Below, piece by piece: positions 267-52,934 of a DNA stretch of 64,000 bases. A program made the translations under genes and the position numbers. The DNA is from Octopus sinensis (Eukaryota), in contig NW_021833441.1 in assembly GCF_006345805.1 (NCBI RefSeq), positions 62,001 through 126,000 on the forward strand, written 5' to 3'. The notes beneath the pieces are model-generated. The model saw nothing but the letters and a program-made list of their open reading frames with translations. It searched no databases and was not told the DNA's origin. Positions within the stretch are counted from its first letter, which is position 1. Each line of letters opens with the position of its first letter.

Positions 267-375
267 CTTACAACCTGCCATTGTTTGCATCCCGACAAGG
301 AAGATAAAATAAGTGACAGCCAAAGAAGAGCACAGGCTTACTAAAATCTTCGAACTCATTAAATCCCATGGATTT
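267..375 (-). CDS. aGPCR exon: ICL1 + TM2 ([36 protein letters not shown])
   Basis: 109 nt, phase 2/0. Acceptor ttcattatttcag, donor gtaagc. Matches aGPCR TM2 SKIL..LC.SL....FIFL.G, ending at the ECL1 Cys. Confidence 0.92.

Positions 376-52934: not shown

Follow-up and report, generated by a model that had tools for sequence, protein, structure and literature searches.

Octopus adhesion G-protein coupled receptors (aGPCRs) have been surveyed before. Ritschard et al. (2019; PMC6408891) described an octopus-specific "group 3" expansion of aGPCRs with a GPS and a seven-transmembrane (7TM) region, in which 5 of 22 sequences carry leucine-rich repeats (LRRs). The group 3 genes are co-localised, bear signs of positive selection and are expressed in the axial nerve cord, suckers and skin. 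GPCR-like proteins bearing an LU domain are also on record, namely LyAr2/LyAp2 of starfish (2024; PMC11595613) and proteins of molluscs and arthropods (2026; PMC13719153), the Fig. 2 legend of the latter paper giving LRR, LU, GPS and 7TM GPCR among the domains. In this study, we analysed 64,000 nt of Octopus sinensis DNA (hereafter the window, C9912:62001-126000), part of an unplaced scaffold (152,962 bp) that belongs to an assembly of 2.72 Gb and 13,516 contigs. The window holds 16 minus-strand exons of an aGPCR gene with the domain order last LRR-LRRCT-LU-SEA-HormR-GAIN/GPS-TM1-2 (TM, transmembrane segment). We found that this gene is almost certainly a paralogue of the octopus LRR-LU aGPCR family. 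Our overall explanation, a family paralogue with 16 of at least 20 exons in the window and in the course of decay, is probable and short of secure.

The family to which the gene belongs is group 3 of Ritschard et al. The proteins of Octopus bimaculoides that cluster at 90% identity with three of our family members (P0020, P0021 and P0022; annotated proteins are numbered P, scaffolds C) are A0A0L8GYR2, A0A0L8FLR8 and A0A0L8HDZ7, and all three are class B group 3 in the supplement of PMC6408891. Thus the family, its octopus expansion and the combination of LU with a GPCR are already on record, and paralogues with the full architecture are annotated. In this sense the window locus has little discovery value, as it adds another, probably defective, member to a published family.

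Exons and domains of the window gene

The relatives of this gene were first reached by a search with the GPS-bearing open reading frame, which led to Octopus vulgaris proteins named "adhesion G-protein coupled receptor G6-like". A search with the LU exon led to the closest relatives, P0007 and P0008 of O. vulgaris, together with the full-length O. sinensis paralogue P0016. Exon boundaries were set by hand from tblastn comparisons of annotated octopus proteins with the whole scaffold. These comparisons yield a single collinear set of 16 minus-strand exons running from 52934 to 267 (E down to 1e-39), with protein identities per exon of 86-100% to the best annotated octopus protein. Exons E1-E12 are 96-100% identical to O. 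vulgaris except for E2 (88-89%), E12 being elsewhere scored at 94-96% to P0007/P0216. Every exon is flanked by canonical splice sites (32 of 32 intact), with AG preceded by a polypyrimidine tract on the acceptor side and GT on the donor side, and exon phases are compatible at every junction. These matches lie far beyond chance, and the exons are real. The first-pass annotation of the window, made from the letters and their open reading frames, had listed 16 minus-strand exons with the end points 52934 and 267, which are exactly the acceptor side of E1 and the last base of E16. The exons are as follows (window coordinates):

52863..52934, minus strand: E1, last leucine-rich repeat; 100% to O. 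vulgaris P0008; AG/GT; phase 2-2
40878..41035, minus strand: E2, LRRCT cap ending ...AQCK; 88-89% to P0007/P0008; ends in phase 1; acceptor as in P0008
35292..35383, minus strand: E3, first part of LU (three-finger); 100% to P0007/P0008; cysteine columns kept across phyla
33200..33383, minus strand: E4, second part of LU; 98% to P0007/P0008; forms with E3 a phase 1-1 cassette
30792..30874, minus strand: E5, first part of SEA; 96% to P0007/P0008
28580..28629, minus strand: E6, SEA, micro-exon of 50 nt; 100% to P0007/P0008; AG/GT
24616..24772, minus strand: E7, last part of SEA, with a -1 frameshift; 157 nt where the phase needs 158
21730..21844, minus strand: E8, first half of HormR; 97% to P0007/P0008; without annotation at this locus
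21100..21257, minus strand: E9, second half of HormR; 98% to P0008; forms with E8 a phase 1-1 cassette; holds the start Met of the RefSeq model P0211
18883..19102, minus strand: E10, helices of GAIN subdomain A; 100% to P0008
18263..18438, minus strand: E11, GAIN, with a +1 frameshift; 176 nt where the phase needs 175
17046..17204, minus strand: E12, GAIN, last exon of the P0008/P0007-like 5' module; 94-96% to P0007/P0216
11460..11588, minus strand: E13, GAIN subdomain B, first exon of the P0001/P0003-like 3' module; 86% to P0046, about 57% to P0007
10914..11063, minus strand: E14, GPS and start of the tethered agonist; Pfam GPS E=2.9e-12; 100% to P0001
10006..10127, minus strand: E15, linker and TM1; 100% to P0001; weak 7tm_2 match
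267..375, minus strand: E16, TM2, with a 12-nt in-frame deletion; 86-89% to P0046/P0003

A longer, P0003-type 5' start of E2 (MNFSV...) was considered as a third frameshift and dropped, the orthologue P0008 using the downstream in-frame acceptor. The 65 nt upstream of that acceptor (41036-41100) hold a frameshifted remnant of the longer exon start, so paralogues evidently vary in their use of acceptors at the LRR/LRRCT junction.

Pfam scans were run on the window exons; whole-protein scans and fold models were made on relatives, in place of the spliced window product. In the window exons, Pfam recognised the GPS, a weak HRM and a weak 7tm_2. The octopus proteins P0016, P0007 and P0008 gave clear 7tm_2, GPS and LRR_8 matches (7tm_2 at E=1e-37 to 1e-41 on P0016/P0007), and LRR-bearing family members reached E=1e-118 for LRR_8, with LRRNT matches as well. 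On the evidence of its sequence, the locus is an adhesion GPCR (class B2), with a GPS ending the GAIN domain and a secretin-type 7TM directly after it.

Neither LU nor SEA gave a Pfam match in the window exons or in P0016, P0007 and P0008. The cysteine framework of LU, LxCxxC ... CC(x)4CN, is nonetheless present across E3 and E4, where it starts LQCQTC, and in alignments of 17-24 sequences from several phyla its cysteine columns and the CCxxxxCN end are invariant or nearly so. Pfam recognises the domain in aligned orthologues: Lingula scored 21.4 bits for Toxin_TOLIP (cut-off 21.2) and also matched UPAR_LY6 and UPAR_LY6_2, the latter family gave E=2e-3 (Glandiceps) to 4e-2 and was matched by Aplysia too, and Liolophura matched Toxin_TOLIP at E=0.022. 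The matches of Lingula, Liolophura and Aplysia map to P0016 168/173-250, the LU segment of the octopus protein. Compared with PDB sequences, the window LU exon matched an activin-receptor three-finger ectodomain alone, at a non-significant E=0.36. For SEA, the Haliotis orthologue gave a Pfam match of E=5.5e-5 (23.7 bits against a curated cut-off of 26.4) that maps to P0016 262-336; the GSVVV cleavage motif was not seen in SEA.

E8 and E9 together contain the HormR signature C...WP.T..G...C...R.C...W...C. The octopus HRM matches stay below the Pfam gathering score (E=0.0027-0.015, the lowest on P0007), and those in other family members range from E=3.6e-5 to 2.4e-6; the matches of Aplysia and of Glandiceps P0054 map to the octopus HormR segment, P0016 361-428. 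We considered whether HormR might be spurious, the first matches (P0001-P0004) having no HormR exons, and dropped this idea because P0007, P0008 and P0016 splice the predicted exons exactly. GAIN is matched by Pfam in orthologues, and Foldseek matched HormR-GAIN structures.

Fold models agree with this order. A first AlphaFold2 (AF2) model of full-length P0016 from 18 sequences was poor (predicted local distance difference test score, pLDDT, of 50; LU below 40), with the helices of GAIN subdomain A at 72-86. A second, from 50 sequences, placed the LRRs at pLDDT 80-96, LU at 53-80 and SEA at 75-89, the SEA part folding as beta-alpha-beta-beta-alpha-beta. In Foldseek, the first-ranked match of the full-length model was 6V55, the zebrafish Adgrg6 ectodomain (535 columns); for the second model, which lacks a confident GAIN-B and 7TM, 6V55 was the only non-LRR match (E=3.2e-4, 213 columns). 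P0007 aligns to 6V55 from HormR through GAIN. The LRR part of the AF2 model matches VLR, Nogo-receptor and LGI1; LRR matches filled the PDB list for the second model, leaving LU not isolated, and the viral library gave none at E<=0.001. Altogether, the GPS score of E14, the orthologue Pfam matches mapped onto the octopus protein and the 6V55 match bear out the first-pass annotation in both its receptor class and its order LRR-LRRCT-LU-SEA-HormR-GAIN, and the order last LRR-LRRCT-LU-SEA-HormR-GAIN/GPS-TM1-2 appears correct in the window, LU being identified by its cysteine framework and by matches in orthologues.

In place of the autoproteolytic H-L/T(S) triad, the GPS of E14 (window 10923-10943) reads R-L/K, with Arg at -2 and Lys at +1 (codons 10932-10940). 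Because of this triad, no GAIN autoproteolysis is predicted. The same R-L/K is common to O. vulgaris P0001-P0003 and to the copies on C29 and C8188, and the paralogue P0016 reads DHL/TSF; R-L/K probably marks a non-cleaving subclade inside the family. Several aGPCRs are uncleaved, and the triad is not required for membership of the class. If the window copy were intact, its LRR/LU head would be expected, by analogy, to bind ligand, the signal would presumably pass through GAIN to a tethered agonist, (K)SFAVLM, and the receptor would stay uncleaved given its RL/K.

The gene extends beyond the window. It spans about 63 kb (C9912:51,945-114,934) and has at least 20 coding exons, those inside the window coding for TM1 and TM2 alone of the 7TM. 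By tblastn, the exons of TM3-TM7 and the tail lie beyond the window start, at window -1717 to -10055 (C9912:51945-60283), TM3-7 occupying -1717 to -6343. The LRR part in the window amounts to a single 24-residue LRR exon and the LRRCT. Neither tblastn nor an LRR regular expression found signal-peptide, LRRNT or further LRR exons on the 152,962-bp scaffold, including the 38 kb upstream of the window gene part, where the scaffold ends. RefSeq annotates the locus with P0211, a 617-aa model at C9912:51945-83214 that spans E9-E20 and carries PF00002. P0211 starts at a Met inside E9, the HormR exon, and leaves E1-E8 without annotation while the 3' half is annotated. Hence the receptor, said at first to be hidden, is half hidden at most: P0211 lies on the same scaffold, and full-length paralogues such as P0016 are annotated elsewhere.

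The late start of P0211 could be taken to mean that the window holds two genes, the upstream one for a secreted, "slit-like" LRR-LU protein and the downstream one for a GAIN-7TM receptor. RefSeq models limited to LRR and LU point the same way, as they are named "protein slit-like, partial" and "slit homolog 1-like" (P0005 and P0014). However, these short models either bear the flag "partial" or stop within the ectodomain, exon phases fit at every junction, and the two halves are joined in P0016 of O. sinensis, in P0003, P0004 and P0007 of O. vulgaris, in P0020 of O. bimaculoides and in other phyla. We therefore regard a division into two genes, which the first-pass annotation had named as the finding that would overturn it, as highly improbable.

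Relatives and age of the architecture

The family architecture comprises a signal peptide, LRRNT, LRRs, LRRCT, at least one LU, SEA, HormR, GAIN/GPS and 7TM. An exhaustive HMMER search gave 1,430 representatives at E<=1e-30, and 20 of the best 150 were looked up. Among those looked up, proteins of O. bimaculoides, Argonauta, scallop, oysters, zebra mussel, Aplysia and the starfish Acanthaster align from LRR or LU through the 7TM. For those of Nucella, Haliotis, a chiton, Lingula and the hemichordate Glandiceps, the alignment is largely confined to the part from HormR/GAIN onward; in all of them except Haliotis, the LU cysteine pattern is also present ahead of the GPS. LRR matches in Pfam were obtained for Ylistrum, Saccostrea, Dreissena, Aplysia, Nucella, Lingula and Acanthaster. 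In Liolophura and Glandiceps the LU cysteines were found and LRRs were not detected. The SEA segment is aligned in molluscan and brachiopod relatives only. Since collinear relatives occur in Mollusca, Brachiopoda and Ambulacraria, the architecture is old, and the alignments indicate, at the sequence level, one origin of the LU-bearing aGPCRs in molluscs, brachiopods and ambulacrarians.

With regard to solved structures, phmmer comparisons of the GAIN and 7TM parts against PDB ranked ADGRG2 (3.8e-73) and ADGRG6 (4.8e-66) ahead of L3, G3, E5, D1 and F1. This similarity ranking suggests an ADGRG6/ADGRG2 type (GPR126 and GPR64, aGPCR family VIII) for the SEA-HormR-GAIN-7TM core, with an LRR and LU head in place of the CUB and PTX of vertebrate ADGRG6.

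These results bear on the view, put forward in the first-pass annotation, that the gene encodes a new, undescribed, lineage-specific and domain-shuffled cephalopod receptor combining LRRs with LU. The vertebrate aGPCRs in our PDB and Pfam comparisons indeed lack an LRR and LU combination, Pfam is blind to LU and SEA in the octopus proteins, and our literature search found no paper setting out the full LRR-LU-SEA-HormR-GAIN-7TM architecture. Against this stand the collinear alignment and LU cysteine columns across Ylistrum, Saccostrea, Dreissena, Aplysia, Nucella, Lingula and Acanthaster, the published octopus expansion with LRRs (PMC6408891) and the GPCR-like proteins with an LU domain that have been published for molluscs, arthropods and starfish (PMC13719153, PMC11595613). 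An architecture common across bilaterians had been named beforehand as evidence against a lineage-specific origin, and collinear proteins in bivalves, gastropods, a brachiopod and a starfish largely amount to that. We consider this view barely tenable. Whether the receptor had been described, a point left undecided at first, thus receives a divided answer: the family and, in the sources just cited, LU-bearing GPCRs have been published, and the full architecture was not found in our literature search.

What is specific to octopuses is a tandem expansion, located mainly on the chromosome-scale scaffolds C27 and C29. The O. sinensis genome holds at least 40 copies of the LU exon at 83% nucleotide identity or more and 41 copies of the GPS exon region of the family, among 71 GPS exons genome-wide that cluster on C27 and C29. 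The assignment of the gene to a cephalopod aGPCR expansion was therefore sound.

The exon structure offers a simple mechanism for the ectodomain diversity of this expansion. LU (E3+E4), SEA (E5-E7) and HormR (E8+E9) each begin and end in phase 1, so that loss or duplication of any such unit leaves the reading frame intact. Paralogue models show such changes: P0003 lacks HormR, P0004 lacks both SEA and HormR, and in the RefSeq models P0005 and P0006 the LU domain is repeated two or three times. In some paralogues, exons for the second half of LU follow one another at intervals of 5-7 kb (C29:1825945-1842655 and C6381:29228-41645), as either serial or mutually exclusive exons. Taken together, the phase 1-1 units, the losses and repeats among paralogues and the LU arrays make cassette gain, loss and recombination a likely engine of ectodomain diversity.

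State of the window copy

As assembled, the 16 spliced exons contain two frame changes and no single open frame. One frame runs from E1 to near the end of E7, another extends from the end of E7 through E8-E10 into the start of E11, and the first then resumes. The first shift is a 1-nt deletion in a T-run (TTT to TT) at 24627-24628, at the end of E7, where orthologues read ...HIDLFDE; of the four closest paralogues, three have 176 nt in this stretch, and the window has 175 nt (paralogue lengths are those of genome-search matches). The second is a 1-nt insertion in an A-run (AAAA to AAAAA) at 18405-18409 in E11, the frame switching just before KIPLEEQQ. Here the window has 196 nt and the closest paralogues have 192 nt; besides the inserted base, the difference stems from an in-frame +3, a duplication of GCT near 18371-18376 that gives VTAAIYS instead of VTAIYS and is found only in this copy. 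Also private to this copy is a 12-nt in-frame deletion in E16 at about 284/285, which, compared with the C29 copy, removes SYVQ at the border of TM2 and extracellular loop 1 (ECL1); the Tyr that is lost is the majority residue at that place in the family consensus. None of the deviant lengths (+1, -1, +3 and -12) is common to the closest paralogues.

To keep a frame open throughout, two weak non-orthologous donors would be required, GTATTG 4 nt downstream of E7 and GTGACA at 18892. P0211 uses the early GTGACA donor of E10 and in this way avoids the E11 frameshift, at the price of a non-orthologous stretch that replaces conserved residues. The eight upstream exons are unannotated because of the frameshift, and E1-E8 thus represent a concrete annotation or assembly issue on O. 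sinensis scaffold C9912. The claim that the 16 exons join into one protein has to be split accordingly: phases, splice sites and full-length paralogues uphold it, and the two frameshifts, the position of TM3-7 outside the window and the absence of 5' exons from the scaffold do not.

Based on the two ectodomain frameshifts, the 12-nt deletion at TM2/ECL1, the lack of 5' exons on the scaffold and the mosaic modules described below, we lean, by a little over an even chance, towards a young unprocessed pseudogene or a decaying recombinant copy. Several observations weigh against decay. Both frameshifts sit in homopolymer runs on an unplaced scaffold, where consensus errors are possible, and the assembly is one that we take to be long-read, which bears on the possibility of homopolymer errors. 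All 32 splice sites are intact, the orthologous frames contain zero in-frame stops over about 711 codons, and the 3' half compared with its C29 relative gives a dN/dS of about 0.6 (13 synonymous and 29 non-synonymous changes), a value that does not point clearly to neutrality. Given how close O. sinensis is to O. vulgaris, however, intactness carries little weight either way. In addition, the 5' exons may lie beyond the scaffold end.

These same observations can be read as signs of an intact and functional gene, an expressed non-cleaving member whose frameshifts are homopolymer assembly errors and whose 5' exons lie past the end of the scaffold. The shifts are indeed single-base length changes in T- and A-runs, splice sites are canonical throughout, and E1-E12, with their close match to O. 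vulgaris in all but E2, keep stop-free orthologous frames. RL/K, being shared with O. vulgaris P0001-P0003, is a feature of the lineage and not of decay. Moreover, the counterpart at C29:1.64-1.655 Mb ends at a 100-N gap, in a region hard to assemble. On the other hand, two frame-breaking indels, one of +3 and one of -12 within 2.1 kb of coding sequence approximate neutral decay and are absent from the closest paralogues, the -12 deletion costs the family-majority Tyr, and RefSeq provides a truncated model and no support for a repaired full-length one. We hold an intact gene to be possible and would propose it only tentatively.

The copy is also a mosaic. Its 5' module (E1-E12) matches O. vulgaris P0008/P0007/P0216 and its 3' module (E13-E19) matches P0001/P0003/P0046. 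The breakpoint lies in intron 12, at window 16500-17600, adjoining tandem repeats. Upstream of about 16.8-17.6 kb, scaffold C8188 is 72-85% identical, compared with 96% on the other side, and on C29 the 5' half is 97-99% like 1.584-1.590 Mb and the 3' half 94-97% like 1.640-1.655 Mb. The chromosomal counterpart of the 3' half, at C29:1639789-1655746, shows 94-97% identity over window -11045 to 12305. Collinearity there stops some 500 bp before the 100-N gap, and no ectodomain exons occur in the next 116 kb; as the matching segment breaks off at this gap, the region appears hard to assemble.

Such a mosaic could stem from gene conversion, from unequal crossing-over or from an assembly chimera. 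In the last case, the scaffold would join two paralogues in intron 12 and the 16 exons would never have been one gene. The different O. vulgaris genes matched by E1-E12 and E13-E19, the drop in identity to C8188 within a tandem-repeat region and the resemblance of the two halves to different C29 segments all suit a chimera. But C8188 is collinear over the same junction, which makes the exon order genuine for the family, P0211 crosses the junction (E9-E20), and unequal crossing-over or gene conversion between tandem paralogues yields the same pattern. A chimeric scaffold is accordingly an unlikely source of this gene, and a decaying family paralogue is the reading we retain.

Some further elements were noted in the introns. 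The window is AT-rich (GC 0.28-0.39), with microsatellites throughout. A long LINE-type (long interspersed nuclear element) sequence occupies 3991-7517 on the plus strand (RVT_1 E=2.5e-29, with zf-RVT), a second, degraded reverse transcriptase lies at 42067-45908 on the plus strand, and a frameshifted mariner-like transposase (Transposase_1 E=2.4e-16) at 50153-51198 on the minus strand. Between E13 and E14, 42 nt at 11241-11282 encode a peptide 100% identical to residues 487-500 of O. vulgaris P0002/P0003. In those proteins this stretch stands in for exons 11-13, either as a conserved alternative micro-exon or as a common gene-model artefact.

Comparison with known receptors

The octopus family resembles Adgrg6 in its order SEA-HormR-GAIN-7TM, in its top structural match (6V55) and in the "G6-like" naming at NCBI. 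Unlike vertebrate ADGRG6, whose head consists of CUB and pentraxin, the octopus proteins carry LRRNT-LRR-LRRCT and LU, and the GPS of the window copy and its O. vulgaris relatives reads RL/K instead of the HL/T of ADGRG6 and ADGRG2. A second likeness is to vertebrate ADGRA (GPR124/GPR125/GPR123), in which an LRR-LRRCT head also precedes HormR-GAIN-7TM; one O. bimaculoides member is named "A3" by NCBI. However, ADGRA has an Ig domain where the octopus family has LU and SEA, and among solved structures the GAIN and 7TM match ADGRG best.

In a wider and rather doubtful extension of these comparisons, LRR-LU-SEA-HormR-GAIN-7TM would be a single ancient bilaterian lineage of ADGRG6 type, kept in lophotrochozoans and ambulacrarians and lost or re-headed with CUB-PTX in vertebrates. 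Octopods would have turned it into a combinatorial repertoire, of which the window copy would be a live recombinant with assembly-error frameshifts. If this were true, so modular and fast-diversifying an ectodomain family, with expression in suckers, skin and the arm nerve cord, might serve in contact chemosensation or in self/non-self recognition.

Compared with the group 3 members already published, the window locus is a broken or partial copy. The account in PMC6408891 does not mention LU, SEA or HormR, and it counts 21 sequences, against at least 40 family exon copies in O. sinensis. The proteins of PMC11595613 and PMC13719153 share with the octopus family an extracellular three-finger LU ahead of GPS/7TM, and Acanthaster P0093 is collinear with the octopus proteins. 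Those papers leave undecided whether such receptors arose independently in each phylum, whereas the present collinear alignments favour one origin. In this way, the alignments supply the full domain grammar of the family and bear on the origin question of the 2026 survey.

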